From Mantamonas sphyraenae STR306 (lineage: Eukaryota > Protista > CRuMs): a DNA stretch of 64,000 bases. The position numbers were made by a program, and so were the translations under genes. Positions 14,688 through 53,078 of this stretch are shown in pieces (position 1 is the first letter of the stretch; each line of letters starts with the position of its first letter). Location of the stretch: the NCBI GenBank assembly GCA_026936335.1, contig JAPMXV010000036.1, positions 124,001 through 188,000 of the forward strand, given 5' to 3'. Under the pieces are notes generated by a model. It saw only the letters and a list, made by a program, of their open reading frames with translations. It ran no database searches and was not told the origin of the DNA.

Positions 14688-14828
14688 AGCGGCGGCAACG
14701 GGCCAACCCCTGATCGCCATCTCTGATCAACAAATGTTTTTCCATTCCCCCCTGCTTCCAGTCCCCTCTGCACGTGCCCACATCCACACACACACACACG
14801 TATATACCCATGCACATGCACAGTGCGG

Positions 14829-16043: not shown

Positions 16044-16080
16044 TGTGTTTCATTCTTGCGTTGTGTTTTGGGAAAATCAC

Positions 16081-18044
16081 TCACTTCACCTGCTGCTGCT
16101 GCTGCTGCTGCTGCTGCTTCTGAGCTCGGGCAGCAATCTTACGCTGCAGGAGCTCTCGCTGTCTCTGTCGTTCGTCATCCATGCTGCCTTTCATGGCCTG
16201 GGTGACGCCCACGACTGCTTGGCGCACCTGCTGTGCCCCCTTATCCTTTGGATCGACCAAGGTCTGCGCAGGCGCCACAATCTCGCTTCGCAGTTTGGCC
16301 AGATGCCGTTCCCATTCCCGTTGCGACATGCCCGACCCTCCCAACGAACGAGAACACAGGTCATCTCTGTCTCGTGTGCCGTTTGCCCCTCCGTCCGATC
16401 CCCGTCGCTGCACCCCGCTGCGTGCCAGCATGGCAAACGGATCGCTGACTTGTGGCAGGTCATTGTTGTGGTGTCTGCTGCTCCCGCCTGCGTCATCCTC
16501 TGCCGCCGCCGTTGCTGCCTCTGCCGCCGCCAGGGCCGGGTCGCGGCTGTGGCTGCCGCCACTGCCGCCACTGCCGGTTGTTGTTTGTACATCGTCAAAG
16601 AACGAGTTGAACGAATTCGAACGCGAGCGTGTCATGGACAGCATGGGTGGCTTGGCCGTTTCCGTCATCACTGCCTGACGCAACTGTGCCATCCTTCGGA
16701 TGGGATTGACCACAGTGGGTGGCGTGGAGCGGTCGATGGATTTGCGTCGCTGTTCCAACGCTGCCTCCCCTGGTCCTTCGCCCTCACCACCACCACCACC
16801 ATCCACTCCTCCTCCTCCTCCTCCATCACCTCCTGCGTCCCCACCACCCATCCCCACCCCTGCATCTGTGCTTCGCGACCTCCTGCGTCGCGCCTGGAAC
16901 GATAGCGACGCTGTGGACGACACCGAGGCACTTCGAGCCCTTCGAGGCGATCTTCGACGGAAGGACACCACCGACAACGAAGTCGACGTGTCCACACTGC
17001 CAAACGCCTCCTCTTGTGCCTCATGTGCATCCACGTCTCATCCACATGGACAACCTGTGGTGGTGGCGTGGAGGCGGCGGCGGCAGTTTCTGCCGTCGTC
17101 GTCGCCGTCTGATCTTCCCTGGCCCTTTCTGGCGACGCCGGTGGTTCGGCGATCAGCACAAGGTCAGCCACGCCTCTCATCTCATCGTCGCTGACGTATG
17201 CGCTGTCTTCGCTGTTCACTGGACTGATGCCTACGCCGCTGCTGGGGGATTTGTTGGCCGGCGGCTGAGCCTTTGCGGCACCCACGACCCGCAGCAGGGT
17301 GTCGCTCTCCTGTACAAAACTGGTGTTGCTCGCTACACTGCTCTCCATGTCCTCCACAGTGATGGAGAGCGAGCTGGACGACAACAGCTCTGTTGGTATG
17401 CCGTCATTCACCTGTAGACGCGGTTTGTCTTGGAAGGCCGGAGCCAATGCCAGACGACTTTCATCCACGCCCGTTCCCGTCCACCAGCTCCGCGACGACC
17501 GCGGCGATTCTGTGCTGCTGCTGCTGCTGCTGCTGCTATTGTTGATTATGGAGGTGTGGTGTCCATACACACTCGCCAGTTCCTGATTCTGTTGCTGTTG
17601 CTGCTGCTGTTGTTGCTGGCGATGAACAGCGGCCGTTTTCACCATCAAGCTCGAGTCTGACACAGACTTGCGGCCGGTGACGCTGATGCGGCCATTGGAG
17701 GAGGAAGGCGAAGGAGATGGCGAATTGCCTCCTGTGGCTGCGCCCGTGGGTGAGAAGGCAGAGCGATGCGAAGCGGAGCTGGTGAGGCTCGCCAGGCTGT
17801 CCCGCTTGCCTGTGCTTCGTAGCTCTCCCAACGCGCTGTGGGTGCCATCCAGGTACAGGGCATCCTCGCTACCCGTCGACTCGTGACGATGCAGCGTCGA
17901 GGATTGTCCCGCGTGCCCGTCGTGCTCCTGCTGGCTTCTCCTGTGCTTCCTACGCTGGCCTTTGCCCGTTTCGGCGGCTGCTGCCGCATCACCCACTTTG
18001 CCTCCACGTCGCTTCCTTGGGCCACCAGACGTTGTGTTTCCCAT
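16081..18044 (-). CDS. Hypothetical low-complexity Ser/Gln-rich protein with N-myristoylation-like start (MGNTTS)
   Basis: ORFs 16668-18044 and 16081-17034 join after a 1-nt correction at ~17037. Short C-terminal helical segment; no recognisable domain. Confidence 0.6.
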
Positions 18045-19413
18045 GACCGTCCCAACCTAGCTTGCTTGTTGTTCCAAGTCCCCTGCGTAGCTTGCGTTGG
18101 TTCGTTGCACAAGTCTGCCCGCTGCTGCGGTCAGGCAAAGCGGGTTGGCGGGTTGGGGAGGTTCCTTTGGCCCCGACACCGCTCTGCAAAACTCGGCGCT
18201 TCTGGAATCCCATTCCACACCGTTCACTCGGATGGCGTTGTGAACGAGTGTGGATGTCAACACAAGGTTGCATCACTCATTCCAGTGGCATGTGCAACCT
18301 TGTCTGGATGCGCTGCTCTCATGTGGCCAAGACAACTCCAAGGGTTCGTTTCGTTCGTTTTTTCTGCCCCAACCGGTTTCCGCCTCCTGCCGCCGCGGAA
18401 CCGTCGTCACCACTGCGTTCCACCTGCGTCGTGGCCCTTTGTTTCTTGTCCCCCTGTGGTATTTGTGTGTGTTTGCACCCTGTGTGTGCTGTGTGGTGCG
18501 CCCTGCTGTCTGCAGGCCACCAGAAAATGGGCTGGGTCTTTTGCGCACTCAGGCGCTGCTGTTCCCGCGGTCGTGGTGACCCAAACACAGCGCACACGCA
18601 TCCATGCGCACCCACAGTTGCATGTACACGTTTGTACGCACCTCGGCAATGTGTTCATGTGGTTTGGATGTTCACAGCCTCTGTGCACGGTCGCACAGAG
18701 CGTGGAACCCGCCGATCCCAACACGAATGCGATGCTGGCCCAAACGTACCCGCGCCACGCACACACGTCCGCCCCTTTCCTTCACCCTCCCACTGCCATG
18801 GCCATCCTCTGCATACCCTCGCCCACGTGTACACATCAACAGTGGGCCTGTGCGCGACCCCCAACCCGCCCCACTGCACACAGCTTCACGGTCCGTGGAG
18901 TTACCCCCCTTTTTTTTTTCGGCAGGGATAACGTCGAGGCAATCCCAGATTTGTTCCAAACGACACGTCCCCGCATATGCGCGACGACTCACACGCACAT
19001 CGCACCCTGGCCACCCTTGTTGCACTGTGCATGGCCCATGCCTGTGCAATCTGCATGTCCACAGGACCTCGCAACAGCGTACACTCCCTTTCTTAACACA
19101 GCAAACTAGCAGGAAAGTCGCCGACCAACCCGCTCGTTTTCTCTTAAGCGTCGTTTTCGCTCTTCCTTCGTCACGTAATCTTCTTTCGACAGGCCACAGG
19201 TAAAACTCGCAGACTTCTGCACACACCTGATTCGCATTTGCCAAGGAACAACCCCTCCTTTGCACCGCAGCCCGCCGAAGCACAACTTTGCGTCAAAAAG
19301 TCCAAGAGCAGCTCAGCCATTCAAGTACACGTAGTCTTCAGCCTACAAGCATACTACCACAAGCACATCAAGGTATCCTACCAATCCAACCTACTTTCTA
19401 CCCCGCACGAACA

Positions 19414-20610
19414 ATGTTGACCACAGCAGCAGTTCAATCGAACGATTTCCTTTCCCCAGCCGAAACCGGCGAGGAGCAGTTTGCCAAGCGCCGTCGCGTG
19501 GACATGTCCATGGACGACCTGGTGACCATCCCCGCCTCCAACGCTTCCACCCTCTACGGTGACAACCAAAGCAGCAGCAGCAGCAGCAGCAAGCTGGATT
19601 TCAGCTCGCTGCCCTCTGTGCCTGCGCCCAGCTCGCCTGCCGAGTCGGCCATCAGCACCACGTCGACGTCCAGTCACGAGGAGCTGCTGGCCGAGCTTCG
19701 CAACATGAAGCGCCAGCAGGAGCACCAGCGTGTGGTCCTCAGCAAGCTGTTCTCCTCGTTGTCCAACAACGAGCACGCCAGCCTGTCCCAGCTCGACCTC
19801 GACCTGACTCTTGGCCACAGCACCGGTGGCAAGAGCGGAGGCTCTGTGAAGCAGCAGCACGCACGCAGCAGCGGCGGCGCAGGCGCAGGCAAGGCAGGCG
19901 CGACCAAGGTGAAGCGCGACGTCGAGGTGACTCTCCTCGACGACGCCATGTTCACCTCGCGCAACGCCACGTCGGGCAACAAGAAGCGCAAGCTGGCCGA
20001 GTTCACCGGCATTGCTGGAAGCACGGACAACCTGTTCAACACGCCCGCCCAACCGGTGATCGTGCCGTCGTCCAAAGCAACCCTGGACGAGTCCTCCATG
20101 GCTCTCACCGGAGCCGAGGAGCAGCACATCGACGCCATGGACACCGATTCGTTCAGCAAGGCCCCGCTGGTGATGGCAGACACCTACTCGGATGTCCGCC
20201 TGGCCGACGAGGCTGCGCTGGATCTGCAGTATGCCATGCGCATGGGCAACGGCGACGACGACAGCAACATGTTCAAGACGCGTTCCCTGGCCGACGAGGC
20301 GGCAGCCATGTTTGACACCGACGAGGACAACTCGACGTCCCTGTTTGGCGACGACTGGGCTTCCATCACCTCGGGCCTGCAGAACAGCTTTGCCAGCATG
20401 GATTTGCCCCTGGATTCCATCCTGGGAAGCAGCAGCAGCGACGACACGGTCAGTGAGCAGCACACAAAGGTGTTCCGCTCGGCCAAGGACTTCTTTGCCA
20501 ACCAGGCACTGGACACCAGCTCCCTTGTGGCCAGCAAGCAGTTCCAGGCACGCGTCACACGCAACTACGTCGACTCTTCCCGCTACGCTTTCCCCATCAT
20601 CAACGCATGA
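19414..20610 (+). CDS. Hypothetical nuclear protein with an HSF HR-A/B-like heptad segment but no DNA-binding domain
   Basis: Strongly C/G-biased codon usage, NLS-like KRRR and KKRK, segment ELLAELRNMKRQQEHQRVVLSKLFSSL. Probable 5'UTR intron ~19200-19270. Confidence 0.7.
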   Translation: MLTTAAVQSNDFLSPAETGEEQFAKRRRVDMSMDDLVTIPASNASTLYGDNQSSSSSSSKLDFSSLPSVPAPSSPAESAISTTSTSSHEELLAELRNMKRQQEHQRVVLSKLFSSLSNNEHASLSQLDLDLTLGHSTGGKSGGSVKQQHARSSGGAGAGKAGATKVKRDVEVTLLDDAMFTSRNATSGNKKRKLAEFTGIAGSTDNLFNTPAQPVIVPSSKATLDESSMALTGAEEQHIDAMDTDSFSKAPLVMADTYSDVRLADEAALDLQYAMRMGNGDDDSNMFKTRSLADEAAAMFDTDEDNSTSLFGDDWASITSGLQNSFASMDLPLDSILGSSSSDDTVSEQHTKVFRSAKDFFANQALDTSSLVASKQFQARVTRNYVDSSRYAFPIINA

Positions 20611-20798
20611 TGACCGGCGAGCTGGCATGAAAAGATGTTGCACGTTGTTGCGTGTAGGCCACACACGGCATGCACGGAAATCGACGGAAAGCAGGGGCCC
20701 TTTCTGGGCCCGCCCTTCATTCTCATCCAACAACAAAAAACGACCATTGACCCCACTGCTGCTGCTTCGTTTATGTGTGTGTGTGCGGGTGGGTAAAA

Positions 20799-21341
20799 TT
20801 AGTGCAGCAGATCAAACTGCATGGACGGCAAAATGGCCTCCACGTGTCGTGGATCAACCTGCACCACGCGACCTGTCCGCTCTTGCTCGTCCTCGGTGCC
20901 GTCTTGGCCGTCTTCCTCGCCTGTTTCCCCAGCCTCTTGCATCGCCTCTGCCGCTGCCCTGTTCATTGCCTCCAGCACAATCTCTTTCAGCAGCAACGCC
21001 GTTTCCCGGCGGATGTTGCTCGTTGGTGCTGCAAGATGAACCCCCGCGCCGTGTTGGTCACTCCTCGCTGACGCCCTAAACGCACACTCCCACTCACCTT
21101 TGACATCGCTTCCCTTTGTTTCCAGCACATGTTTCATGACAAGCTCCACCGTGTTCTGCGCAAGCGGTGGCCGGAAAAGCCGAGGAGGTGAGTGATCATC
21201 CAGCGTCACGCACTTTGGGGCTTGCCATCGACACACAGGCGTAAATGGCAACCGGCAAAGACACGCGGGCAACGCGCGGCAACATCGGCAACCTACGTCG
21301 TCAAACTCGACATCGAGGATGTCTGGCACGTCCCCCTCCAT
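20799..21341 (-). CDS. CENPX: CENP-X / MHF2 histone-fold protein
   Basis: Three exons give EFDD|NTVELVMKHVL..|..ALLLKEIVLEAMNRAAAEA..VDPRHVEAILPSMQFD, matching the CENP-X pattern (FVVEAA.R..A..VD..LE.VLPQL.LDF). Confidence 0.75.
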   Translation of the reverse strand: MEGDVPDILDVEFDDVGCRCCRALPACLCRLPFTPVCRWQAPKCVTLDDHSPPRLFRPPLAQNTVELVMKHVLETKGSDVKGEWECAFRASARSDQHGAGVHLAAPTSNIRRETALLLKEIVLEAMNRAAAEAMQEAGETGEEDGQDGTEDEQERTGRVVQVDPRHVEAILPSMQFDLLH

Positions 21342-21396
21342 GCCAGGCACCGTTTTCCGCGCGTGTTTCTGGGTTTTAGGGTTGGTTCCGAGGGAG

Positions 21397-22996
21397 ATGA
21401 GCTCTGCGCAAGCCTCTGTGGACGCAACAGACACGCTAGACACGCTGCCCGAGGGCGAGGCACACGCAGAGGAGCAGGGCAAAGAGCAAGGGGAGACACA
21501 GGAGCAGGAGAGCGGTGAGGAGACGGTGGAGGCCGTGGTCGAAGGAGAGGACAGCCAGGAACAGCAAGAAACCGGCGTCAAGACCCTGTTTCGACAGCTG
21601 ATGGTGTACAATGTCAACACGACCTTCTGGACACAGTCGATGGGCCGTGGATTGAAGCCACAGGCAAAGGCAGGAGCCTCATGCACGCCGGCACGCAAGA
21701 ACCTGCTTGTGTTTGGCGGCGAGGGACCCCAAGCCGGCTCGTTTGACAATGCCCTTCACTACTTTGACATGGACAAGCGCACCTGGAGTGTGGTCGCCTA
21801 CAAAGACGGGGATCCTGTGCCTGCGGCTCGCTGTGACCACAGCGCCGCCTTTGTGGCCTTCAAGGATCTCTTTGTCTTTGGCGGTGTCCTTCACACGGGC
21901 GCACTCTCCAACGAACTGTGGTCTTTCAGCACACGCACCCTCGTCTGGCAGTGCATTGGACCTAAGAATGCCTCCTCCTCCTCCTCCTCCTCCTCCTCCT
22001 CCTCCTCCTCTGCTTCCTCATCATCCGACAGTGGCGACGCACAGGACGCCGATCAGCCGTGGCCTTCGCCGCGCGCCATGGCCTCCTTTCACCGCGTCGG
22101 CACAGCCGTATACTTGTATGGAGGATACCAAGGTGCGTGTCAGGTGTTCCCCGGGCCCTGTGTCTTTCGTTTCACAGTGCGTGTGTGGAAAGAAAAAGTC
22201 AACAACGTGTGTGTGGGTGTGGGTGGGTGCGAGTGCTGCTGACACACACACACGGGAACCCCGACAACCCATCCGCAGACGGTGCAAACGGCCAGCTGGA
22301 GCCTGGATACGACCTGTGGCGATTGGACAGCAAGGCAGGCACGTGGGAACAGATTCCATGTGACGACAACACAGAGTACCAGCACGGAGACGTTGTGGGC
22401 GAGTTCACACACGTCCGAGGCGTGCCTGAATTGCCGCCCGGCACACCAAGCACGCGTTTGGGCAACGCAACCATCCTATTTCTGGACGACACAGCCCTGT
22501 GGAAGCTGGACACGTGTAAGTTGCGGGAGATTTTGTACACCCGCGCGGTGTTGGGAACATTTTGGGGAGGAAAGCGCCTCGGGGTGCCGAACGGGGACGC
22601 TAGCGTGGGATCGCCGCCTGACACACGCACATTCGCTCACGTTGCATTGCACGCCCTGTCTCTTGTCTCTTCCAAGCCAATCACACGTGGTGGTTTGCCA
22701 CTGTGCAGGCGGTGAACAAGTCCATCCTGCAAACATTCGACTTTATCACCGTCTATGGCCACGATCAGGAAATGGCACAGCAACTGCATGTGTTGGGCCG
22801 CGACGGTCCATTCTTGGCCACCGATGTCCTGGACATGGAAACCATGAGCTGGAGCAGGTTTGAATCTTCCAGTGTGCTTCCCGAGTATCGGCAGCGCGCC
22901 GCCGTCGCCGGCGCCTCTGGACGTGTCTTTGTGTACGGCGGCGAAACAGAGGCCACTGTGCGTGTGGTGGAAATGATCGCCACCCCTGACGAATGA
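21397..22996 (+). CDS. Kelch-repeat protein
   Basis: LLVFGG, ARCDHSAA..LFVFGG, PSPRAMAS..VYLYGG, RVFVYGG. Two introns (donors ~22132 and ~22516). Confidence 0.8.
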
Positions 22997-23529
22997 ATCA
23001 ACATACATTTGGTCCTGTGATGTCGTCAAGTCCTGCGTTTTTTTCGGCCAGCCGGAAAGTCCACTGCAACTTGCGCCCACTATGCGTCCCCACGTGCCAA
23101 GAAACTCTTGGAAACTGGGTTGGCATGTGTGCACAGGCGTCAGGGTGTGTTCCTTGTCCCTGTGGGCCCGTGTTGACCCCAGCCCGTGTCGCATCGGGCG
23201 TCGGAGAATTCGAGGGCGCCACTGCGCAAAAAAGAGGAAAAACGGCGTCTCGCGTTGTTCTCACTGCCGTGGCCACAGATCTCGCAATGGGCACAAGCGG
23301 TGATGTGGGGTCACTTTGGACCCATTTGTGACCAGATGCTATGAGAATGTGGATGGATGCATGCGCAAGGTCAACCAACCTCAGGCAAGCAAATCGAAGG
23401 ACGCGCTTTGGAACCACAGGAAATACTTCGAACGACACGAACCCGGGCTCCCACAAGGCACCGGCCATCGAAACCCCTTCAAGAGCACTGCAGATGCCCC
23501 AAGACGTGGCGCATCCACACATCAGTGAC

Positions 23530-25079
23530 ATGTTTGAACCATTCATTCAACCAGCAGAGGAGGCAGAGCGGCTGGCAAGCGAAGGAAAGGTGGAGTCCCT
23601 TCCTGACGGCCGCCGCTTTGTGTTTCCACGCAGCGCCACGACGTTTCTGATCAAAACATACCTTATCCTGGAGAATCCAGACACGCAACACATCGTCTCA
23701 TGGGACTGGGGCGAGTACAATTGCGAGGACAGTGGTGTGGACGACCATGTGGACGAAAGTAGCAGACGGACCACACCACGACGCAGCGCCGCTCGCCGCG
23801 CAATCACCCTCAGAGAGCCCAAAGAGGCGTTCTACAACGGATACACGGCGCAAAGCAACGCAGAGAACCCGTGTCGCTTTGTGGTGCACAACACAGACCT
23901 GTTTGAAAGCAACGTGCTCCAGTCCGCCTTCAAGCACAATCGGCTTTCGTCCTTCGTTCGTCAACTCAACAGTTACGGCTTCCACAAGGTCGACACAGAC
24001 ACCTTTATGCATCCCATGTTCCGCAGAGTGGACCTACAGAGCATAGGGATGATCCGCCGCAAGGCAACTTCTCACCAGGTAAGCTGCACACTTCCCCCCT
24101 TTTTTCGGCGTCGCGGTCCTTCGCGAGGTTTGTGGATCGGAGCCGGCGACTTTTGACCCCCACAAGGCGCCTTAGGCTCTCCGGTCGGTCCCCATGCCTA
24201 TGGGGGCCCCGGCACCTAATCGACCAACACGGGTGTGTGCAATTGTGCACATTGAAATCACTCGTACTGTGAATACTCACACAAAAGCGCGCACACGGGT
24301 GTTTTTTTTTTCGCGCAGGCCCGGCCCAAGCGCAAGCACGTCTCCTCCACCAACAACAGCACGGAGGAGGCACCCGCAGGCACCACCGCCTCGCCGGCGA
24401 GCAGCTCTTCCAACAAAACGACACCCAAGGGCCAATCGTCAGCTAGGGACATCACGCAAGCGCGCAAACGGCAGCGAGTGAGCAAATCGACGTCTGCCGC
24501 AAATCCGAACTGGCGCCCCAACTCCATGGCCGGCGTGCTCGCCAGTGAGCTTCCTGTGGTGCCGGCGGCAGGAGTGATGAGCATGTACTCGCCTCAGAAC
24601 CTCACTGCGCAGGCCATGACCATGTCCCTGCACGCATTGCAGAACAACGGACGCGGCAGCAGCATGAATGGCCCCACTCCGTCCCCTACGGCAAAGGCCA
24701 ACATGGACTCAGGTGTGCCTGCCATGGACGGGTTGGACAGCAAATCACGAGAGTTGGTCCTTCTCAAGGCCCAACGCGCTGTGTACGTGGAACAGATTCG
24801 TGCGATGCAACTGGAGTTGCAAAACCAACAAGGCGCGCTGCACCTGATGGAGCAGGAGTTGCAGAAAACACAGGCGTTGGCGCAACGCTATGCCATCACC
24901 GTGCAACACCTTCAGAGCCTTGTAAACAGCAAGAGCGACACAGCAAGCACAGGTGACAGGAGCACGGCAAGCAGCGACTCGTCGAGTCACAGCCACCATT
25001 CGTTGAGCAAACAGACGGGATCTGCAGGCGACGGAGGGGTGGGCATGACACGCGAGCAGCAGCAGCAGCAGCAACAAAG

Positions 25080-25111
<32 letters not shown>

Positions 25112-26056
25112 AGGAGAATGGGCATGGGAGCAGCGACAACACCGAACATTGCCAGTGCGAGACACATCATGAGCATGATGGAACGGGCACACAACATGCG
25201 CAACGAGGTCGCCAAAAACAACGGCACACATCTGGGTGACCCGTCACAGTCGCCGTCTGGGTCGACAGCGAGCACACAGCTGAGTACCGCATCGACGAGC
25301 TTGAACGGCAGCAACAGCAACAGCAACAGCATCAGTGATGGAAGCATCGGAGGCAACGATGGGCTGAGCAAACGCAGCAAGAGCAGACACAGCCAGGACA
25401 AAGAAAGGCCAGGAAGCAGACACAGCAGCGAGAGTCACAGCAGCAACAGCACGGAACAGCAACGGGCACACAATCACACCACAAAGACATCCACAGATGA
25501 CTCCAACAGCGAAGGGGGACGCTCACGCAGCAGCGGAACGGACAGTTCGGGCAGCCGCGGCAGCAGTGCAAGCAGCTCACGCAGCAGCAAGAGCCGCAGC
25601 AGAACTCGAGGGCAGCCCAGCGCCAAGGGTCGGCGTAGGGCACGATTCTCACGCAGACGCACCGTTCAATCCAGCGAGTCACCTCCGTTCAGTGTGTCGA
25701 TGACAACCACAAGGATGAGCGACGACGACAGCGACGGCGGACGAAGTCGCATCAGCGGAGGCAGTGGCAACGGCGGAAGCAATTCCAACAGCAGCACCTC
25801 GGGGGTGTTCAGCATGATTTCATCACCTGATGCTCTGGATGAATCTGTGACGGAACTGCTGCGCCAGGCCCCGATGAACCTGTCCAACCGCAGCCAAAAC
25901 ATCATCACCCTCACAGGCACGGGCGACAACGTACTCATTTCAGAGAGCAACTCGATGGAGTCACGGAGTCGAGAGGACAGGCGGCCACGCGAGGCGGATA
26001 TGGATTTGGACATGAACGATCAGGGTGTGCTGATGGGATGGAACCCAGTTGGATGA
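23530..26056 (+). CDS. HSF-type transcription factor, paralog A (start could be 23494 or 23341)
   Basis: FLIKTYLILE..IVSW, then a ~50-aa insert, then FKHNRLSSFVRQLNSYGFHKV..FMHPMFRR..IRRK. Intron 24079-24318; coiled coil; Ser-rich tail ending LMGWNPVG. One frameshift in the CAA repeat at ~25078. Confidence 0.85.
25057..25110. repeat. CAG/CAA trinucleotide tract in HSF-A containing the frameshift
   Basis: (CAG)5 CAA CAA A GAA (CAA)n. Confidence 0.85.
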
Positions 26057-26195
26057 TTTGGGGGGTGACTTCCGCCGCCCGAACGCCCGGGAAACATGCA
26101 CAGGGATGTGGAAAGGGAAGGAAAGCAGGACGAGAATGAAACACAACAGAACAGAGTGCATTGCCACTTTCACGGGATGAGGTGGGAGTGGGGAG

Positions 26196-28007
26196 ATGCG
26201 CGACGGTGAGAACACTGAAATCACACGTGTGGGCATGGACATTGACGACGCGGACAAGGAGGTGGTGTTGAAGGGAGAGGAGGACGATGGGGCAGTGTAC
26301 ATGGGATCCCTGGCCGAACAGATGGCCAGTGGGCAGCTAAACAGGAGCAGCAAGGAAGAGGCACTGGAACGCGGAAGGCGGGCCGGGAACATCAACGTGC
26401 TGGAACGGGGCAAGGGCAAGGGCAAGGGCAAAGGTGGAAAGAGGGGAAGTGGTGGTGGAGGAAAGGGTGGCAGCGGGGATGGGGACGGGGATGGGGAGAG
26501 TGAAGACGAGGAGGAGGAGGAAGACGACGACGACGACGACGACGTGATGGAACTGAGCGAAGTGGCACTTGCAAGCGTGCAGGAACGGAAGGAACTGGAA
26601 CGGGAGTTTGAACGGAGGAGCAAACTGACGCGAGTGGTTGTGCCTGCACTGGACAAGGATGTGCGAGCACGGTTGCGGTCGTTGGAGCAGCCAGTGACGC
26701 TGTTTGGAGAAGGGACGGAGGATCGGAAGAACCGACTGCGAGCACTGCTGGTGGAGTATGGAGGAGAGGTGGGAGAGCTGCCAAAGAGCAGAGCAGAGGT
26801 GAATGCAATGCTGAAGCAAAGGCAGGAAGAGGCAGCGGCGGCAACATTGGCACGAAGGGCAAAGGAGAAGGAAAGGGCAGCGGAGGTGGTGTACACGGAG
26901 GGGAGTGTGACACTGAAGGAGGCACGTGAACGGATAGCCAAGTATTCATTGGCACGTGCCAAGGTGCGTGTGGAGGCGGAACGGGCACGGGAGGCGGAGG
27001 AGGATGCAGAATCGGAGGAGGGACTGCGACGGGTGGCCAAGGCACATCGAGAGGAGAAGCGACGGTATGGGGCGTTTGGGGCACATGCATCGCAGTTTGG
27101 AGGGACACGGCCTGTGGTGGGATGCAGTGTGGGAGGGAAGGCGGGAGAGGAGGTTGTGGGAACGGCGTGTTGGACGGGAGGGGTGGCTGTGTGGAGTGCA
27201 GTGACATGCAAGGAGATTGTGCGTATGGAAGGGCACGAAGAGAGGGCAACGGGGGTGAAGATGCATCCACGTGTGGTGGAGGGAGGACTGGAAGGAGTGG
27301 GCAAGGGAGAGGTTGGGCTGGCAAGCTGTGGGGCAGACGGGGTGGCGAAACTGTGGAGTGTGGAGGGAGGAGCAGCGTTGGGAGAGCTGAAGGGACACGG
27401 GGGAAGGCTGACGGGGATCGCATTCCATCCGAGTGGGGAGTACGTGGGCACATGTGCACACGATGGGACGTGGCGACTGTGGGATGTGGAACGACAGGAG
27501 TGTGTGCTTGTGCAGGATGGACACTACTCGACACCGTACGATGTGAGCATGCAGTGTGACGGGTCGCTTGCGGTGACGGGTGGACTGGATGCAATGTTGC
27601 GAGTGTGGGATTTGCGGACGGGTCGGAGTGTGCTTGCGCTGCAGGGACACGTGAAGGAGGTGTTGTGTGTGGACTTTGCACCGAATGGGTATCAAGTGGC
27701 GAGTGGGTCGATGGACAATGCGATACGAGTGTGGGATCTGCGGCGGAAGGAGTGTGTGTACACGATGGCAGGACACCAGAAGCTTGTGAGTGGGGTGCGG
27801 TGGACGGGGCGGAACGGAGGGGTGCTTGTGAGCAGCTCGTTTGATGGGAGTGTGCGGACGTGGAGTGGACGGGACTTTGGGTTGATTGGGGTGTTGGCAA
27901 GTCACGACGACAAGGTGATGTGTGTGGATGCGGGGGTGGACGGGGAGTGCATTGTGAGTGGCGGGTATGACAAGACGTTCAAGGTGTGGAGGGAAGAGAT
28001 GTTGTGA
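26196..28007 (+). CDS. PRPF4: U4/U6 snRNP protein Prp4 (WD40), copy 1
   Basis: Prp4/SFM motif VRARLRSLEQPVTLFGEGTEDRKNRLR, YTEG..LKEARERIAKYSLARA, then seven WD40 repeats. Intronless. Confidence 0.92.
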   Translation: MRDGENTEITRVGMDIDDADKEVVLKGEEDDGAVYMGSLAEQMASGQLNRSSKEEALERGRRAGNINVLERGKGKGKGKGGKRGSGGGGKGGSGDGDGDGESEDEEEEEDDDDDDDVMELSEVALASVQERKELEREFERRSKLTRVVVPALDKDVRARLRSLEQPVTLFGEGTEDRKNRLRALLVEYGGEVGELPKSRAEVNAMLKQRQEEAAAATLARRAKEKERAAEVVYTEGSVTLKEARERIAKYSLARAKVRVEAERAREAEEDAESEEGLRRVAKAHREEKRRYGAFGAHASQFGGTRPVVGCSVGGKAGEEVVGTACWTGGVAVWSAVTCKEIVRMEGHEERATGVKMHPRVVEGGLEGVGKGEVGLASCGADGVAKLWSVEGGAALGELKGHGGRLTGIAFHPSGEYVGTCAHDGTWRLWDVERQECVLVQDGHYSTPYDVSMQCDGSLAVTGGLDAMLRVWDLRTGRSVLALQGHVKEVLCVDFAPNGYQVASGSMDNAIRVWDLRRKECVYTMAGHQKLVSGVRWTGRNGGVLVSSSFDGSVRTWSGRDFGLIGVLASHDDKVMCVDAGVDGECIVSGGYDKTFKVWREEML

Positions 28008-28124
28008 GTGGAAGAGGTGGGGAGGTAGGTGGAGGGTGTGAACAGGGGGAGGGTGGAGTGTGGAGGGTGGTGGAGAAAGGGATGGGTGGTGGGAGGTGGA
28101 GAACATTGGATGGATTTTGTTTGG

Positions 28125-28227
28125 TCAGAGCTTGGCTTCTTGATGGTCTTGCTTCCACAGGAGGTGTTCATCGCGCTGCATCTCTTGGACAGTGAGGTCG
28201 TACACGGTGCCAGCGTCCATGAGCTTG
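28125..28227 (-). pseudogene. Duplicated 3' fragment (last 33 codons) of the AAC(3)-like gene, carried by the left IR arm
   Basis: KLMDAGTVYDLTVQEMQRDEHLLWKQDHQEAKL* is identical to the C-terminus of 28291-29186, in opposite orientation. Confidence 0.9.
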
Positions 28228-28290
28228 TATTCGCCCAGCCACAGAGACAGCTGGTCGACGCCGTCTCTGCCATCGCAATAGCAAAACCAG

Positions 28291-29186
28291 ATGAGCAGCA
28301 GCAACGATAACGAGAACAAGCTGACGCAGGAAGAGTTGGAGGATGGATTCAAGAAGTTGGGTCTGAAAGAAGGAGACATGGTGCTGGTTCACTCGTCGTA
28401 CAAGTCGTTTGGAGGCGTTGAGGGTGGGCCGGCTACGGTTATCTCGACGCTGATGGCTGTGCTGGGTGACGAGGGCACACTGATCATGCCCACGTTCAAC
28501 TTTGCCTTTTGCAGGGGTAAGTCATCGGGCGTGTGTGCATGTGGGGTGTCAGAAAGGGGGAGGAGGACCGCTGACGTGTGGTTTTGGGGGCCGGAAAAAT
28601 TGCGCGGTTGCCTACAGGCGAAGCATACGACGCACGTACTACACCATCGAAGATGGGAGCCATGACAGAGATGGTACGCACAAACGAGGCAGCTCGGACG
28701 GTGATGCATCCATGGTACTCGTTTGCTGTACTCGGGGCAAGGGCTGAGGAACTGAGCAAGATCAAGGCCAAGGACGCGTACTCGGACGAAAGCCTACTGG
28801 GACAGCTGGCACCCATGGGAGCCAAGATCATGGTGATTGGGTTGGAGTACAACATGAGCATGACCTACTTTCACCATGTGGAATGGATGCAAAAGGTGCA
28901 CTACCGCTACTTCAAGGATTTTACGGGAACGGTGACCGACCTGGATGGCAACACGTACGAGGACACGTTTCCCTTTTTCGTACGGGACATCGACATGGGT
29001 GTGGTTACGCAGGTCAACCCCATGGGAGAGCGGTTGGACGAACTCGGGGCTGTGGCAAAACAGACCATCGGCAAGTCAGAGTGCAAGCTCATGGACGCTG
29101 GCACCGTGTACGACCTCACTGTCCAAGAGATGCAGCGCGATGAACACCTCCTGTGGAAGCAGGACCATCAAGAAGCCAAGCTCTGA
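28291..29186 (+). CDS. AAC(3)/YokD-family (Antibiotic_NAT) acetyltransferase, bacterial-like, with a spliceosomal intron
   Basis: LGLKEGDMVLVHSS..GG..GTLIMPTF, PSKMGAMTE, HPWYSFAVLG, IMVIG..MTYFHHVE. Intron 28517-28617 (GTAAGT..CTGAC..CTACAG). Confidence 0.9.
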
Positions 29187-31281
29187 CCAAACAAAATCCA
29201 TCCAATGTTCTCCATTCCCCGCTCCTCCTTTCTCCACCTCCCACCACCCATCCCTTCTCCACCCTCCCCCTGTTCCCACCCTCCACCCACCTCCCCACCT
29301 CTTCCACTCACAACATCTCTTCCCTCCACACCTTGAACGTCTTGTCATACCCGCCACTCACAATGCACTCCCCGTCCACCCCCGCATCCACACACATCAC
29401 CTTGTCGTCGTGACTTGCCAACACCCCAATCAACCCAAAGTCCCGTCCACTCCACGTCCGCACACTCCCATCAAACGAGCTGCTCACAAGCACCCCTCCG
29501 TTCCGCCCCGTCCACCGCACCCCACTCACAAGCTTCTGGTGTCCTGCCATCGTGTACACACACTCCTTCCGCCGCAGATCCCACACTCGTATCGCATTGT
29601 CCATCGACCCACTCGCCACTTGATACCCATTCGGTGCAAAGTCCACACACAACACCTCCTTCACGTGTCCCTGCAGCGCAAGCACACTCCGACCCGTCCG
29701 CAAATCCCACACTCGCAACATTGCATCCAGTCCACCCGTCACCGCAAGCGACCCGTCACACTGCATGCTCACATCGTACGGTGTCGAGTAGTGTCCATCC
29801 TGCACAAGCACACACTCCTGTCGTTCCACATCCCACAGTCGCCACGTCCCATCGTGTGCACATGTGCCCACGTACTCCCCACTCGGATGGAATGCAATCC
29901 CCGTCAGTCTTCCCCCGTGTCCCTTCAGCTCTCCCAACGCTGCTCCTCCCTCCACACTCCACAGTTTCGCCACCCCGTCTGCCCCACAGCTTGCCAGCCC
30001 AACCTCTCCCTTGCCCACTCCTTCCAGTCCTCCCTCCACCACACGTGGATGCATCTTCACCCCCGTTGCCCTCTCTTCGTGCCCTTCCATACGCACAATC
30101 TCCTTGCATGTCACTGCACTCCACACAGCCACCCCTCCCGTCCAACACGCCGTTCCCACAACCTCCTCTCCCGCCTTCCCTCCCACACTGCATCCCACCA
30201 CAGGCCGTGTCCCTCCAAACTGCGATGCATGTGCCCCAAACGCCCCATACCGTCGCTTCTCCTCTCGATGTGCCTTGGCCACCCGTCGCAGTCCCTCCTC
30301 CGATTCTGCATCCTCCTCCGCCTCCCGTGCCCGTTCCGCCTCCACACGCACCTTGGCACGTGCCAATGAATACTTGGCTATCCGTTCACGTGCCTCCTTC
30401 AGTGTCACACTCCCCTCCGTGTACACCACCTCCGCTGCCCTTTCCTTCTCCTTTGCCCTTCGTGCCAATGTTGCCGCCGCTGCCTCTTCCTGCCTTTGCT
30501 TCAGCATTGCATTCACCTCTGCTCTGCTCTTTGGCAGCTCTCCCACCTCTCCTCCATACTCCACCAGCAGTGCTCGCAGTCGGTTCTTCCGATCCTCCGT
30601 CCCTTCTCCAAACAGCGTCACTGGCTGCTCCAACGACCGCAACCGTGCTCGCACATCCTTGTCCAGTGCAGGCACAACCACTCGCGTCAGTTTGCTCCTC
30701 CGTTCAAACTCCCGTTCCAGTTCCTTCCGTTCCTGCACGCTTGCAAGTGCCACTTCGCTCAGTTCCATCACGTCGTCGTCGTCGTCTTCCTCCTCCTCCT
30801 CGTCTTCACTCTCCCCATCCCCGTTCCCATCCCCGCTGCCACCCTTTCCTCCACCACCACTTCCCCTCTTTCCACCTTTGCCCTTGCCCTTGCCCTTGCC
30901 CCGTTCCAGCACGTTGATGTTCCCGGCCCGCCTTCCGCGTTCCAGTGCCTCTTCCTTGCTGCTCCTGTTTAGCTGCCCACTGGCCATCTGTTCGGCCAGG
31001 GATCCCATGTACACTGCCCCATCGTCCTCCTCTCCCTTCAACACCACCTCCTTGTCCGCGTCGTCAATGTCCATGCCCACACGCGTGATTCCAGTGCTCT
31101 CACCGTCGCGCATCTCCCCACTCCCACCTCATCCCGTGAAAGTGGCAATGCACTCTGTTCTGTTGTGTTTCATTCTCGTCCTGCTCTCCTTCCCTTTCCA
31201 CATCCCTGTGCATGTTTCCCGGGCGTTCGGGCGGCGGAAGTCACCCCCCAAATCATCCCACTGGGTTCCATCCCATCAGCA
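29084..31281. repeat. Right arm of the 2.2-kb inverted repeat (partner 26028-28227)
   Basis: Contains the AAC 3' end, PRP4 copy 2 and the last 9 codons of HSF-B. Confidence 0.97.
29308..31113 (-). CDS. PRPF4: U4/U6 snRNP protein Prp4 (WD40), copy 2
   Basis: 601 aa, differing from copy 1 by three N-terminal substitutions and two fewer Asp. Confidence 0.92.
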   Translation of the reverse strand: MRDGESTGITRVGMDIDDADKEVVLKGEEDDGAVYMGSLAEQMASGQLNRSSKEEALERGRRAGNINVLERGKGKGKGKGGKRGSGGGGKGGSGDGNGDGESEDEEEEEDDDDDVMELSEVALASVQERKELEREFERRSKLTRVVVPALDKDVRARLRSLEQPVTLFGEGTEDRKNRLRALLVEYGGEVGELPKSRAEVNAMLKQRQEEAAAATLARRAKEKERAAEVVYTEGSVTLKEARERIAKYSLARAKVRVEAERAREAEEDAESEEGLRRVAKAHREEKRRYGAFGAHASQFGGTRPVVGCSVGGKAGEEVVGTACWTGGVAVWSAVTCKEIVRMEGHEERATGVKMHPRVVEGGLEGVGKGEVGLASCGADGVAKLWSVEGGAALGELKGHGGRLTGIAFHPSGEYVGTCAHDGTWRLWDVERQECVLVQDGHYSTPYDVSMQCDGSLAVTGGLDAMLRVWDLRTGRSVLALQGHVKEVLCVDFAPNGYQVASGSMDNAIRVWDLRRKECVYTMAGHQKLVSGVRWTGRNGGVLVSSSFDGSVRTWSGRDFGLIGVLASHDDKVMCVDAGVDGECIVSGGYDKTFKVWREEML

Positions 31282-33420
31282 ACTGGGCATTGACTGGATC
31301 CGAATCCAACTGGGTACCAGGTGGACGCGTGCGTGGCGACTGCAGACGGTCGTCTGTGCCGTTGCTGTCCACACTCAGGGCTCGGTTTGTCCCTTCCAGC
31401 CCCAGTGCCAAACCAGACTGGCCAAACAATTCCGTTACAGACTGGTCCACCCCCACCGGCGTGGCCAACATGCTAAACACGCCACCCATGCTCTTTTCGC
31501 TCGACGTGCCGCTGTTGCTGCTCTCCTGACCCGTGCTCCCTCCGCTGCTGCCGCTGCTGCTTCCACTGCTGCCCTGGCTGCCTTCACTGGATGGCGACTG
31601 TCTGCGTGTGCTTGAACGACCCTTGCTCTCTTCCGTTTCCCAATCGCCCTTGCCACCGTTGCGCCGTTTGCTACGCCTCGATCGCGAACTGTGATGCTTT
31701 CGTCCGCCACTCGACGAATTGCGATGATGGTGGCTGCTGCCCGAAGATCCCGACGTGCGTGAACGGCTACGTGAACGTGAGCTCGTGCGTGAGCTGCTGT
31801 CGCTGTTGCTGTCGTCCGTGCTCTTGCTGCCCTGCGAACGTCCGCTGCTCGCCGACGAGTAGCTGCCATCCAACATTGTGTAACTCATGTCGCTGCCCAC
31901 ATCACTGGTGCCCGTGCTGTTGCTGTTGCCCGTACGCACCGTGCTAATGCTCTTGTATCCCATGTTGGGAGAAGGCAACTTCTTCCCCAAACCCAGCAGC
32001 CTCGCTTGCCGGATGCCTGGCAATCCCTTGCCCTTGCCCATGCCCCCGGCGATCATGTCGTCCACAGATCCATCCGACGCCACCTCTGCCCCTCCGCCTT
32101 GCATGCGACGCACCACCATGGCGTACTTTTGGGCCACCACTTGCGTTTTGTGGAGTTCCTGCTCCATCATTTTCAGTGCGCTCTGCTGTGCGTGCATTTC
32201 CATCTGCATCGCCTTCATCTGGCCCAGGATCATGTCTCGCTCAGTCTTGAGCAGCATCAGCTCATGCATGTGGTTCTCAGACATCGTGTTCATCGTGTCG
32301 GAGCTGGCTCGAGACGCGGAACTCGCCCCATTGTCGCTTGTCGCTCCGCTTGATTTGCTGCCATTCTGTGTCGCAACCGGGTGTTGGGTCACACGATTGC
32401 CTCCATGGTACACCTGCAGCACATCCGGCTTGATGGAGTTTTCGCCGAGGATGTCGGCAAGCGCGTCGTTTCCTGCCCATTCCGTCCCCTCGTTGTCCCC
32501 GTTTGTTCGTTGACGTTTCTTGCTCTGTCCCACACTGCCAGCGCGTGTGGAGCGGCTGTGCTGCGAACTAATCGTAGAACGAGCATTCATCTCTCGGAAA
32601 TCGACTTCGCCGTCCTGTGTCTCCAACGCCATGTCTGCGGGGGGAACTTTGCGCTTCTTCCGATTCTGCGCGTTTTTTGGGGAGTTAGATTCTGCGCCTC
32701 ACAACCAGCTCCCGCGACACGCACATCCAAGCACACGCCACGCGCATGCACAATATCCGTTCTTCATGTCCCCACACATGCAATGCAAATCGGCTGCACA
32801 GCCCGATCTCCCCACACAAGCAGAACCTGACTTCCGTGGAAGACGGGGTTGCTCAATGGAAGCAATGCGCGATGCTTTTCCACACTTACCCGTGCGCTTG
32901 CAGTCTTGCGTTTGATGCGTCCAATGCTGTGCAAATCCTGCCTACGGAACATAGGATGGCTGAACGTGGAGGTTTCCACCTTGTGGAAGCCGTAGCTGTT
33001 GAGTTGTCGAACGAAGGAGGAAAAGCGGGAATGTTTGAAGGTGTTGCTCAATACTTCCCGCTCAAATGCACCGATGTCGTGGATGACCAGTCGGCACGGG
33101 TTCACTGCGTCGCTGTAGTCCAGATACTCCCCGTTCTCGTCTTTCATCAGTCGTTGGCTCTCATCGTCCGAGGCGTTGCGACGCGTTCCGCGTCGCTTTT
33201 TTCCACTGCCCAAAGGTCGCCCGCCTTTTCCGTACGTCTCCCAGTCCCACGACACGATGTGCTGCGTGTCCGGGCTTTCCAAAATCAGGTACGTCTTGAT
33301 CAGGAAGCTCGTTGTGCTCTTAGGAAACACAAACACACGCCCATCACTGCTGGTTGCCTGCTTCCCGTCAGAACGCAGTGCTGCCGCCTCCTCCTCCGGC
33401 TGTTCATACAGTGTGAACAT
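31253..33420 (-). CDS. HSF-type transcription factor, paralog B
   Basis: MFTLYEQP..FLIKTYLILE..IVSW, then an insert, then FKHSRFSSFVRQLNSYGFHKV..FSHPMFRR. Intron 32889-32666 (GTAAGT..CTAAC..CGCAG) at the same position as in paralog A; NLS KKRKV; coiled coil; ends LMGWNPVG. Confidence 0.88.
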
Positions 33421-33864
33421 GCCCGTCCCGTCTTGTTTTTCTTGTGTATCGCTCACTTTCGGATCTTCCGGTGGTGTAGTGTGTTTCTAGTGATACGGCT
33501 TCTGTGCTACGACTACGGAATGCGCTGAACGGGGTGAGGTGTTTTTTTTTGAGCAGGCAGGCGCAGAAAAATTTTGGGGAGTTGGCCCTGAAGGAGCCTC
33601 CCTCGTCTGATCGCAGCACCAATTTCACAAACGGTCAGAAGCCGCCGCACACTTGAAGCATGTCTACGTCGCCAGCAAAGTCTGTCTCCCCGACAACATG
33701 CTCAACAACCAGCGGGGGGGTGTGACGAAGCCAGGGGGCACTTTCTTCCAGAAAAACCTGGACGTCTTTTTCCGATTGGCACTTTCCACACCACACAACC
33801 AAACCAAGCCCGTCGTTTCCCATCAAAGACGCGCAATCTGTGCATCCGAACACCTGGCAGATGC

Positions 33865-34471
33865 TCATCGCTTTTCCATTTCCTCAGCCCTCGCCTGCAT
33901 CGCCCGCCGCACCATCCGCGCTTTCTCTAGCTTGTGAATCGACTCTGTGACCTGCCCAGCCACATGCTGTCCACTGTATACATGTGTTGAATGTGTTGAC
34001 GCACTTCCACCCCGGTTCACTTCGATTTGCTTCATGTCTGACCGTGGCACGCCCACACGAGTCACTACCGCCGCAGCGTTGCCCTCCCGCTCCTCTCCTG
34101 CGTCCAGCAAAGCACTTCCCAAGCCCTTTGCACTCACTCCTCGCCGCAACTCGCTTCGCATCTCCTGTAGCTCGCTCACACCCTCCTGAAACTCCCTCCG
34201 AAGCTGCAAACGGCCAGGTCAGCGCCAACCGCGACTCGCCAACGCGCCCCCCTGCATCCCACGCCTCTCCATCTTCCGAAAAGCTCACCTCGTCCAGTTG
34301 CGACTCCTTTGCGAAACGCTGCAGCATCGCCCGCGTCGACTGTACATACCCTACGGCCCTCCCCACCGATCGCCCCACAAGATACGCAATGCGCGGAAGC
34401 TGCTGCGGCCCCACAACCACAACCGCCACCCCAGCTGTCAGCACAACTTCCGTCACACTCAAGTCAAACAT
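33865..34471 (-). CDS. tatB: Mitochondrial TatB-like twin-arginine translocase subunit
   Basis: MFDLSVTEVVLTAGVAVVVVGPQQLPRIAYLVGRSVGRAVGYVQ matches the TatB pattern (MFD..E..TMH-GP..LP-amphipathic helix), with GRA.GYVQ as in plant mitochondrial TatB. Intron 34288-34204. Confidence 0.8.
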
Positions 34472-34547
34472 CCATGCGTGCCCAACTCTTTGTCCACACG
34501 ATGTTTCCCCTGCCCGTGCCCGTGCACAACAAACGCCACCATCCCAC

Positions 34548-37226
34548 ATGTCCAAGCGCACCCCGTCGCCATCCAACACATCCATATCCACTGCCTCCAC
34601 TGCCCCAAAACGCATGCGTGTCGATGACACCCTCACTCGCTTCAGCGACGTCGCCATGTACGCAATCTGCCCGCAAATAGGTTTGCTCCAAATCACCGCT
34701 CACACTTGACTCGATCCTGACACCACACACTCATCCAGCAATTCTCCAGACCCATCCACCGTTTCCCTCACCATTACACCCACCACATCCACCTCATCTT
34801 CATCTTCATCTTCATCTTCATCCTCATCTTCATCTTCATCCTCATCCTCATCCCTCTCCTCAAAGACGAGCACCCAGATCCCTCTCACGCCCGTGTCGGC
34901 AACCCCAAGCAAGTACATTGTCGCTGTGGCTGAAAACAAAGGTGGTGAGGTCGGCATGGCTGCCATCGACACTCGCTACCCGTGCCTCGAACTCTTTTAC
35001 CACGCGGATTCCATCAACACCTATGCACTGACTCTGACTCGCTTGCACAACCTCAACCCGGCCGAGATCCTCCTTAGCAGCACAAACACCCGCAAATCCA
35101 AGCGCTCCGACTCCAGCTCCGCCTCGACCGCCGATTCACAGCTCACACGCACCATTCGCCAGGCCCTTGTTTCCTCCACCACCTCCAAAACCAAGCTCGT
35201 CATGATTGCCCGCATGCACTACAACGACTCCAAGGGGCTCCTCTACGTCCGCTCGCACAGTGCCCAGGATGTGGACCTCCTTGAACTCGAGCATTCCAGC
35301 AAATACTTGTGCCTGGCAGCAACACACGCCCTCATGACCTATCTCGAGTACGAGCACCACCTCGCATTTGCGCGCCACTCCCTCAAGGTCGTCTACTGCG
35401 GCATCCAAGGTCATATGATGCTCGACACCTCGTCCATTGTCAACCTCGAATTGCTGGCCAACCTGCGTAGCGGCAAGACTCAACACTCGCTGTTCGGTCT
35501 TCTCAACCGCACCAAAACGCCTGCCGGTGCAAAGTTGCTTCGCTCAAACATCGTCCAGCCACTCGCCGATGAGAGCAGCATCCGTATGCGTCTCGACTGC
35601 CTTGATGAGCTCCTCAACGACGAAGGTCTCTTCCACACCTGCCAGGCCTCTCTCGCCGCCTTTGCCGACATGGACCGCATCCTCAGTGCCCTTGTCAACA
35701 TCCACACGGGAAATCAGGTGCGTCACGCCGTCCAGGGCATCCAGAACATCCTGTGCCTCAAGCAGAACCTCGAGTTGCTGCCCACGCTGCACGAGGCAAT
35801 CGCAGACTGCCACAATCCCCTTCTCCAGGCCATGGCCGACAACACCGCACACCCGTCCTTTGACCATCTGCGCAAGCGCATCGACGAGGTCATCAACCCA
35901 GATGCAGGCTTGTCCACCTTTCTTCTTCGCAAGAAGATGCAGCAATGTTTTGCCGTGCGCACCGGAATCAACGGTCTCCTCGACGTTGCACGCCGCACCT
36001 ACAGCGCCACATGCGAAGAGATCTTCCAACTCTCTCAGGACCTGTCTGAACGTCTGCAGTTGCCCGACCTGCGCCTCGCCTACAATGCCAAACGCCATTT
36101 TCACCTGTCGTGCGCCGCGCCGGCCGGGGATCTTTCCCTTCCCGAGGAATGCGTCCAGGTCTCACGCCAACGCAAACGCATTGTGTTTTCCACTGAGCAG
36201 CTCATTTCGCTGTCCAACCGCAACACAGAGGCCATGGAGGAGGTGTTCTTGCTGGCCAACAAGGTGGTCGAAGATCTCGTCGCCACGATCCGCAAAGACA
36301 TCGGACCGCTGCACAACCTCAACGAAAGCATCGCCTTGCTCGACCTCATGGTTTCACACGCTGCGTTCGTGTCGACCAGCAACGAGTACGTGCGGCCTGA
36401 GGTCACGGCCGACGGGCCCATTGCCATCCGCCTGGGGCGACACCCCATCATGGAGGTCATCCGGGCGCAGCAGTTTGTGGCCAACGACACGTACATGGGC
36501 GACACGAGCAACTTCCAGCTGCTTACCGGACCCAACATGGCGGGCAAGTCGACCATCCTGAAGCAAATCGGCCTCATTGTCATCTTGGCCCACATCGGAT
36601 GCTACGTTCCTGCAGCGTATGCTTCCATCCGCATCACCGACCGCTTGTTCACTCGCGTGGGCACAGGGGACAGCATCGAAAACAATTGCAGCTCGTTCAT
36701 GCTGGAGATGAAGGAGATGGCCTACATTGTGGAAAACACCACCGACCGCTCATTGATTCTGGTGGACGAGTTGGGACGCAGCACGAGCCTGGGCGATGGA
36801 TTTGGCATTGTGTTTGCCCTGAGCGAGTACCTGCTCAGCTTGCGTGCGTACTCCCTCTTTGTCACGCACATCGAAGACATGGAGCTTCTGGGCCGCCTGT
36901 ATGCAAACGTGCGTCAGTTTCAGGTGCTGGTTCAGATGGCCAACCATGGAGTGGTGTACCAGCACACCCTGGCCCAAGGCTTTGCCAAGAGCAACGAGGA
37001 TGCGATCTGGTGGCTGTGCAAGGTAGCCGGTCTGCCTGCGTCGCTCATGGACCATGCCAAGAGCGTGCTCCAGGACATCGAGCAGGTGCGTGCAAGCGTG
37101 CGCTCTGCTGAGGCCAACAAGGCCCTGTACGATGTAGCCCAGCAACTGTTGAATCTGCGCAACTCGAGTATGGCTCCCGAGGCCATGCAGACGTACCTGC
37201 GCACGTTGCGCAATCGCCTGCGATGA
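34548..37226 (+). CDS. MSH4: Meiosis-specific MutS homolog 4
   Basis: IVAVAE..GEVGMAAID, SKYLCLAA..LMTYLE, QCFAVRTGINGLLDVARRTY, Walker A GPNMAGKST, SSFMLEM, DELGR. No mismatch-recognition domain I. Probable first exon 34548-34657 and intron 34658-34738. Confidence 0.92.
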
Positions 37227-51020: not shown

Positions 51021-51188
51021 CGGGGGATTGGTTGGGGCCGCGAGGGCGTTTGGAAGGAAGGACTGGTAAAGAACGAGGATGGGTTGAAAAGTGACGACTG
51101 ATGGATGCGGTCAGGACCGCCAGTAGCGGATTGTGAGGAACGAGGACACCTTGGAGATCGAGAGCGATGGTGCCCTCAAAAGATAATC

Positions 51189-51256
51189 AAATTTTGATTC
51201 AAACGAGAATAACATTGATACAACGAAACTGCAAATTTACATTTGAATCAAAATTT
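51189..51256. repeat. Perfect 15-bp AT-rich inverted repeat (AAATTTTGATTCAAA..TTTGAATCAAAATTT)
   Basis: 51189-51203 is the exact reverse complement of 51242-51256, with a 38-nt spacer. Confidence 0.9.
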
Positions 51257-51272
51257 ACACACCGACGGATGA

Positions 51273-52853: not shown

Positions 52854-53078
52854 GCCGATGTGTGCACAAGTGCCAGAGGAGGGGGGAAACGCTTGTGTGG
52901 GGGGGGGAAAGTTTGCTCCAAATGGAGAAACGGCGCCACACGACGCCAAACATCCATCGAAGCATGGAGATGCCCCTCATGCAACATGAGACCACACTCC
53001 ATGGTATTGCGATACCTGTGTCATTGATGCGCATGCAAGGCGCATAGGCAACCAACCAAAGTCACGGACGCAACAGGG

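Follow-up and report, generated by a model that had tools for sequence, protein, structure and literature searches.

How did two deeply diverged transcription factor genes come to stand at the outer ends of near-identical inverted arms? The question is raised by positions 23530-33420 of a 64,000-nucleotide stretch (the window) from Mantamonas sphyraenae STR306, contig JAPMXV010000036.1 (C36:124001-188000). Here two heat shock factor (HSF) genes, HSF-A and HSF-B, converge on two copies of the PRP4 gene, with one acetyltransferase gene (AAC) between the copies. M. sphyraenae is a diploid, deep-branching protist of the CRuMs, and its genome paper describes a FALCON assembly with mostly telomere-to-telomere contigs (PMC10492846); the assembly searched here has 25,061,354 bases in 78 contigs. 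The initial annotation headlined the locus as mating-type-like, with two alleles, and offered as its second alternative an old duplication with homogenised inner arms and escaping transcription factors. This second alternative is the one supported by the divergence strata and by recurrence in the genome. On balance, the locus is probably an old local inverted duplication, whose inner arms have been homogenised by gene conversion while the HSF bodies escaped.

The gene order is as first annotated, HSF-A (+, 23530-26056), PRP4 (+), AAC (+), PRP4 (−) and HSF-B (−, 31253-33420). When the window was compared with itself, one long inverted repeat was found, 26028-28227 against 31281-29084, with 98.5% identity over 2204 columns, in agreement with the earlier claim that near-identity sets in abruptly within the last HSF codons and extends for 2.2 kb. 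The onset is 2 nt before the LMGWNPVG-stop codons in both HSFs; these codons have a single synonymous difference, at 26050. From 26028 to 28026, 8 substitutions and one 6-nt indel separate the two arms (~0.4%). Because the last 103 nt of AAC are inside the right arm, the left arm carries an inverted AAC 3′ remnant. From the start codons to the inner edge, the HSF-A and HSF-B halves are collinear in mirror orientation, in divergence strata. The self-comparison of the window gave no outer repeat, the outer flanks of the two HSFs are unrelated, and no homology was found upstream of their starts, the downstream flank alone being common.

The structure is real and not a haplotype mis-join. Four public runs from a single study supplied contigs, which were placed on 23480-29420; runs X1 and X2 are DNA, and X3 behaves as RNA. 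Depths in X1/X2 were 51-59/38-39 on HSF-A, 88/68 on PRP4 and 49/35 on the spacer, and HSF-A, AAC and the upstream flank are equal in depth. The HSF-B contig depth was 42 in X1, ~0.8x the full diploid depth of HSF-A. The comparison of arms with spacer that had been proposed for this locus gave 1.7-1.9x for the arms, relative to AAC and HSF-A in both DNA runs, and ~1x for the spacer and the HSFs. A mis-join is rejected because it predicts AAC depth equal to PRP4 depth, and AAC was found at half. Thus, where the initial annotation had named a mis-join as what would undo the structure, it is depth, not spanning long reads, that supports the structure. No short-read contig spans the whole locus; a single contig, 28228-29113, covers the spacer in both DNA runs. 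Structure and copy number are in this way observed directly.

So are the presence of HSF-A on both homologues and the transcription of both HSFs. HSF-A shows two alleles, with 12 sites in 2.5 kb (~0.5%), and AAC also has allelic differences, indicating that both homologues carry HSF-A and AAC. The AAC remnant is 41 nt shorter in one allele (28187-28227 missing), with 28186 joined to 28228 in both DNA runs. In X3, the HSF-A and AAC introns are skipped, and contig depths, which are a poor measure of expression, were 15-18 for HSF-A, 11 for HSF-B, 96 for PRP4 and ~340 for AAC. Because HSF-A and HSF-B contigs are both found in X3, both genes are transcribed in one culture, although this is a bulk culture and exclusivity of the HSFs at the level of the cell is possible. 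At 26123 the RNA contig of HSF-A has the base of the right arm, a hint of variants common to both arms. Several arm variants are found at 26126-26248, on contigs that are not phaseable, and part of the differences between the arms may still segregate instead of being fixed.

Divergence changes sharply along each half. For the HSFs, exons were searched and aligned separately, not as joined spliced models. The conserved blocks of HSF-A and HSF-B have 66% amino acid identity and a fourfold-site p of 0.64, near saturation, whereas the PRP4 copies, one complete copy per arm and the only two in the genome, differ at 0/308 fourfold sites; this is the comparison that the initial annotation had recommended. 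The arm-to-arm divergence (~0.4%) about equals the allelic divergence of HSF-A (~0.5%). These strata, too, are direct observations.

The proposed course is as follows. A block of ~4.7 kb with an HSF, PRP4 and the AAC 3′ tip would have been duplicated head-to-head around AAC long ago, with template switching as a plausible mechanism. Intrachromosomal conversion between arms 856 nt apart would keep the inner 2.2 kb as similar as alleles, while the HSFs, with indel-prone low-complexity Ser/Gln regions, would have ceased to pair and diverged until nearly saturated. Conversion would end at the last block still conserved, which is the W-N-x-x-G-stop motif at the C terminus, common to the subfamily. 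This would leave a pair of co-expressed HSF paralogues, diverged except for a common 3′ end, and PRP4 copies that are interchangeable. That conversion was the process, that it continued over time and how the duplication arose are inferred.

Gene conversion depends on pairing and stops where the copies have gathered indels and substitutions (PMC3924837). Duplicates under interlocus conversion, as in the opsin example, resemble the locus in having a near-identical tract beside a diverged tract, with pairing loss, and possibly variants common to the copies (PMC3924837). They differ in that the homogenised tract in Mantamonas is a whole passenger gene with intergenic DNA, nearly the entire transcription factor has diverged, and a spacer of <1 kb lies between inverted copies. 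Palindromes with HSFY on the Y chromosome are also similar, with near-identical inverted arms kept by conversion and an HSF-family gene involved (PMC4772468). On the other hand, the HSFY copies are homogenised in several primates (PMC4772468), whereas the Mantamonas HSFs are the part that escaped, and HSFY is on a sex-limited chromosome, whereas this locus is on both homologues, with allelic single-nucleotide polymorphisms in HSF-A and AAC and arms of 2 kb.

HSF-A and HSF-B belong to a larger group. The genome has 13 HSF-domain matches, seven of which form a lineage-specific subfamily with the same insertion in the DNA-binding domain (DBD; clade support 97-99). The members are HSF-A, HSF-B, C (C36:277659, +), D (C36:293035, −), E on contig C39 and two on contig C47, and 6/7 are in inverted pairs. 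The DBD insertion, the coiled coil and the GVFS-like C-terminal motif are subfamily-wide rather than confined to A and B. The initial annotation had taken the insertion, coiled coil and motifs as links between the two, together with the phase-0 intron, which is indeed placed after the DBD in both genes. Among the comparisons of HSF-A, HSF-A and HSF-B are mutual best or joint-best matches in the DBD and coiled coil, and their split is among the deepest in the subfamily tree. C and D are sisters (support 87-93). Paralogue E is intronless and has the GVFS motif, with a related W-N-x-x-G-stop at its end; a sister relationship of A and E was rejected (AU p 0.001). A word-index search of protein collections gave no orthologue of E in other Mantamonas or in any other species. 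With HSF-B exon 1, HMMER gave generic HSFs only, the top match being a multi-domain oomycete protein. The HSF-A/B locus and the other HSF loci were found to have no neighbours in common.

The two C47 copies score equally and sit in inverted arms of 99.95% identity. This contig is 78.5 kb long, with arms at 14615-27772 and 50842-64000 (at least 13 kb, one subfamily HSF each) that probably extend beyond these limits; it is possibly a palindromic minichromosome or an assembly fold-back. No rDNA or structured RNA was detected on it at Rfam gathering scores. As to location, 5/7 subfamily HSFs are within about 26 kb of a contig end, and the subtelomeres C36:294785-300677 and C39:1-2916 have ~3 kb in common at ~90%.

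Recurrence is directly seen in the C/D pair, which repeats the A/B anatomy: convergent HSFs, an unalignable middle, and an inverted repeat starting inside the HSF 3′ end. The C/D DBDs are 76-82% identical in DNA (fourfold p 0.46). The repeat is 2.6 kb long at 97%, with arms of 88-100% identity in patches, a 7.5-kb spacer containing ankyrin and LRR genes, and passenger DNA unlike that of A/B. Both HSFs have a frame break or stop near the repeat edge. C/D is an independent pair with the A/B layout at a younger stage. A degenerate HSF-like gene in the C/D arms was considered and dropped, as Pfam gave no confirmation. Beyond the HSFs, coordinates and scores place RAD51 (C1), RPL8 (C3) and RPL23A (C60) in inverted pairs a few kb apart with equal scores, selected cases that show the existence of palindromes, not their frequency. 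Likewise, C50:164171 and 176207 form an inverted WD40 pair with near-equal scores. As a separate observation, C56:355283 and 358046 are an inverted pair of GATA fragments, also with near-equal scores. The parts of the genome paper that were searched contain no mention of small gene-bearing palindromes (PMC10492846).

Several results weigh against an old duplication kept alike by conversion. The two PRP4 copies were compared within a single species, and the old age of their duplication is presumed. Among 124 kinase candidates scored, no inverted identical pair was evident and direct tandem copies were present, so that the inverted-pair pattern is recurrent but not common per gene. The C-terminal motif of HSF-A is 70% identical to that of E and only 37% to that of HSF-B. 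The tree does not have A and B as sisters, yet their sisterhood was not rejected (approximately unbiased (AU) test, p 0.24 and 0.49). Base composition also matters here. PRP4 fourfold sites have G at 181 and C at 16 (G/C skew 0.84), which fits a C-rich domain around the right arm and ends at the outer edge of the left arm. This position-linked skew counts against the duplication-plus-conversion course because long two-way conversion should have damped it. On the + strand, C prevails at 29.2-36 kb whichever way the genes are oriented, HSF-A is near neutral, and a strong excess of G is confined to the left arm and the AAC intron; the fourfold-site skew of AAC is near zero. The skew jump falls at the palindrome centre (window 26028-36000), and the G-rich left arm can mean either a recipient copy or a locus placed on a skew jump.

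The strongest rival takes the copying to be recent and one-off. Convergent HSF-A and HSF-B would already have flanked AAC and a single PRP4 when a break or stalled fork at the HSF-A 3′ end invaded the HSF-B C-terminal motif; the last codons of HSF-B, PRP4 and the AAC tip would have been copied and rejoined just upstream of AAC. The arms would be alike because they are young, perhaps with slight later conversion. We regard this course as possible but rather doubtful. The edge is sharp at a conserved motif, and identity is uniformly high, intergenic DNA included. While the upstream part of the HSF-A C-terminal motif is like E, as given above, its final eight residues are those of HSF-B. The intact AAC continues into the right arm, and the left remnant stands alone, decaying in one allele. 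The left arm, being G-rich, departs from the composition around it, and the right arm agrees with its C-rich domain; yet the skew could also be a jump with the locus at its centre, as the AAC intron is G-rich too. Recent copying would also require the same rare event twice on one chromosome, as the C/D pair is there, and the patchy C/D arm identity fits repeated conversion better. Besides, an older local inverted duplication of the HSF would still be required. Both courses are ectopic exchange between inverted paralogues, timing being the main difference.

For the duplication step itself, template-switch inverted duplication by origin-dependent inverted-repeat amplification (ODIRA) offers a likeness: the inverted copy lies next to the sequence it came from, separated by a short spacer, and a neighbour is truncated where the two join. 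ODIRA yields inverted triplications with identical young copies (PMC4689423), whereas no third copy or junction microrepeat has been shown in Mantamonas.

Could HSF-A and HSF-B be former alleles of a cell-identity locus that were fused in inverted orientation, giving a homothallic or decayed flip/flop system? The two factors are deeply diverged with a common flank beginning inside their 3′ ends, and the split is among the deepest of the subfamily; the comparison is limited to one isolate, one species and bulk RNA. Nevertheless, this origin is very unlikely. The headline of the initial annotation fails as a claim of idiomorphs because HSF-A is on both homologues and HSF-B has near-full depth, and both are transcribed. 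Heterothallic mating-type (MAT) idiomorphs encode a homeodomain, HMG or alpha-box factor, whereas the Mantamonas first exons match HSF (PF00447) and no other Pfam domain. Heterothallic idiomorphs also have one allele per haplotype and common flanks on both sides, whereas both HSFs are on one contig and only the downstream side is common. A search of literature titles and abstracts gave no HSF mating-type determinant. The divergent factors with a common flank, read earlier as a MAT sign, recur with the same anatomy in the C/D pair, inverted pairs also exist for housekeeping genes (RAD51, RPL8, RPL23A), and HSF-A and HSF-B are within a seven-member subfamily.

Budding-yeast flip/flop and primary homothallic MAT loci resemble the locus in having gene-containing inverted repeats of ~2 kb that include gene ends, and two different transcription factors nearby (PMC6692504). 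The invertible region of FF1 contains the MAT genes themselves; in FF2, one set is silenced by a centromere that the inner repeat moves or a telomere that the outer repeat moves (PMC6692504). The FF2 inner-repeat pair has its counterpart here, which is the geometry that the allele origin can claim. In contrast to FF1, the HSFs are distal to the arms, and only 28228-29083 inverts. In contrast to FF2, the locus is mid-chromosome, lacks an outer repeat as well as a common upstream flank, and has an 856-nt spacer almost filled by the expressed AAC gene. With a flip, the distances between the AAC start and the two HSF starts would change from 4.8/5.1 kb to 5.5/4.4 kb. In contrast to flip/flop silencing, both factors, which are HSF paralogues, are transcribed in bulk RNA.

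Another use of the same geometry would be a functional invertible cassette, in which AAC is flipped by arm-to-arm crossover and its orientation modulates the expression of neighbours. The repeat geometry permits the flip, and the fourfold skew of AAC near zero is in keeping with flipping; AAC would remain intact in either orientation because its 3′ end is present in both arms. However, the spacer is nearly central and a flip alters little, any inverted repeat permits passive flipping, and the region of the left remnant lacks RNA contigs, making a functional cassette highly improbable. An assembly artefact by mis-joined haplotypes or a fold-back chimera, although conceivable for a FALCON long-read assembly of a diploid with no contig over the whole stretch, is scarcely credible given the doubled arm depth in two DNA runs, a left junction with its own allelic variant and unrelated outer flanks.

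The features of the locus are collected in Table 1.

Table 1 Features of the HSF/PRP4/AAC locus, in window positions
Feature	Position	Strand	Description
HSF-A exon 1	23530-24078	+	Pfam PF00447, E 1e-18; DBD with subfamily-specific insertion; spliced RNA contig
HSF-A intron	24079-24318	+	phase 0, 240 nt, GT..AG; skipped in RNA run X3
HSF-A exon 2	24319-26056	+	coiled coil, low-complexity Ser/Gln region, GVFSM..VTELL motif, terminal LMGWNPVG
Left arm	26028-28227	+	HSF last codons, 3′ untranslated region, PRP4 promoter region, PRP4, AAC 3′ remnant
PRP4 left copy	26235-28007	+	U4/U6 small nuclear ribonucleoprotein, PRPF4-type; Pfam PF08799 and WD40; upstream ATG at 26196 opens the frame
Inverted AAC 3′ remnant	28125-28227	−	inner edge of left arm, by alignment
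Unique spacer	28228-29083		856 nt; sole segment inverted by arm-to-arm crossover
AAC (AAC(3)/YokD-family acetyltransferase)	28291-29186	+	Pfam PF02522, Antibiotic_NAT; 264 aa; intron 28518-28618; intact spliced frame
Right arm	29084-31281	−	98.5% identical to left arm by alignment
PRP4 right copy	29308-31074	−	by alignment and Pfam
HSF-B exon 2	31253-32665	−	470-aa open frame; coiled coil, low-complexity region, GVFSML..VTELF, terminal LMGWNPVG
HSF-B intron	32666-32889	−	phase 0, after exon 1
HSF-B exon 1	32890-33420	−	HSF DNA-binding domain, Pfam PF00447, E 4e-20

HSF-A exon 2 is covered by RNA contigs at 24316-25047 and 25137-26141. Its frame breaks near 25075-25080, inside a CAG/CAA microsatellite run where the contigs are cut. 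The break is probably an assembly error, as RNA contigs flank the repeat on both sides. AAC is a bacterial-type gene, single-copy in the genome, with its intron spliced in RNA. Its best database matches are ~54% identical, and because the closest named ones are Chloroflexota, the sequence suggests that AAC may have been acquired horizontally. A MutS-family gene (domains II-V) is at window 34893-37226, 1.5 kb upstream of HSF-B. The palindrome centre, C36:152656, is 2.3 kb off the midpoint of the 300,753-nt contig. An isochromosome or end-to-end fusion was rejected: outward of the HSFs no mirrored paralogues were found, and the window has no interstitial telomere arrays. No rDNA or other structured RNA was found in the window at Rfam gathering scores.

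If the allele origin were true after all, mating-type determinants would gain a new class, close to the base of Amorphea. Divergent transcription factors with a shared flank are, however, not specific to mating-type loci in the M. sphyraenae genome. As an old duplication shaped by conversion, the locus is a clear case of conversion halting in the last codons of a gene, with C/D as a younger natural replicate. The pairs described here suggest that M. sphyraenae repeatedly forms small gene-bearing palindromes on ordinary diploid chromosomes, and this genome-wide pattern, together with the 6/7 HSFs in inverted pairs, merits more attention than the single locus.

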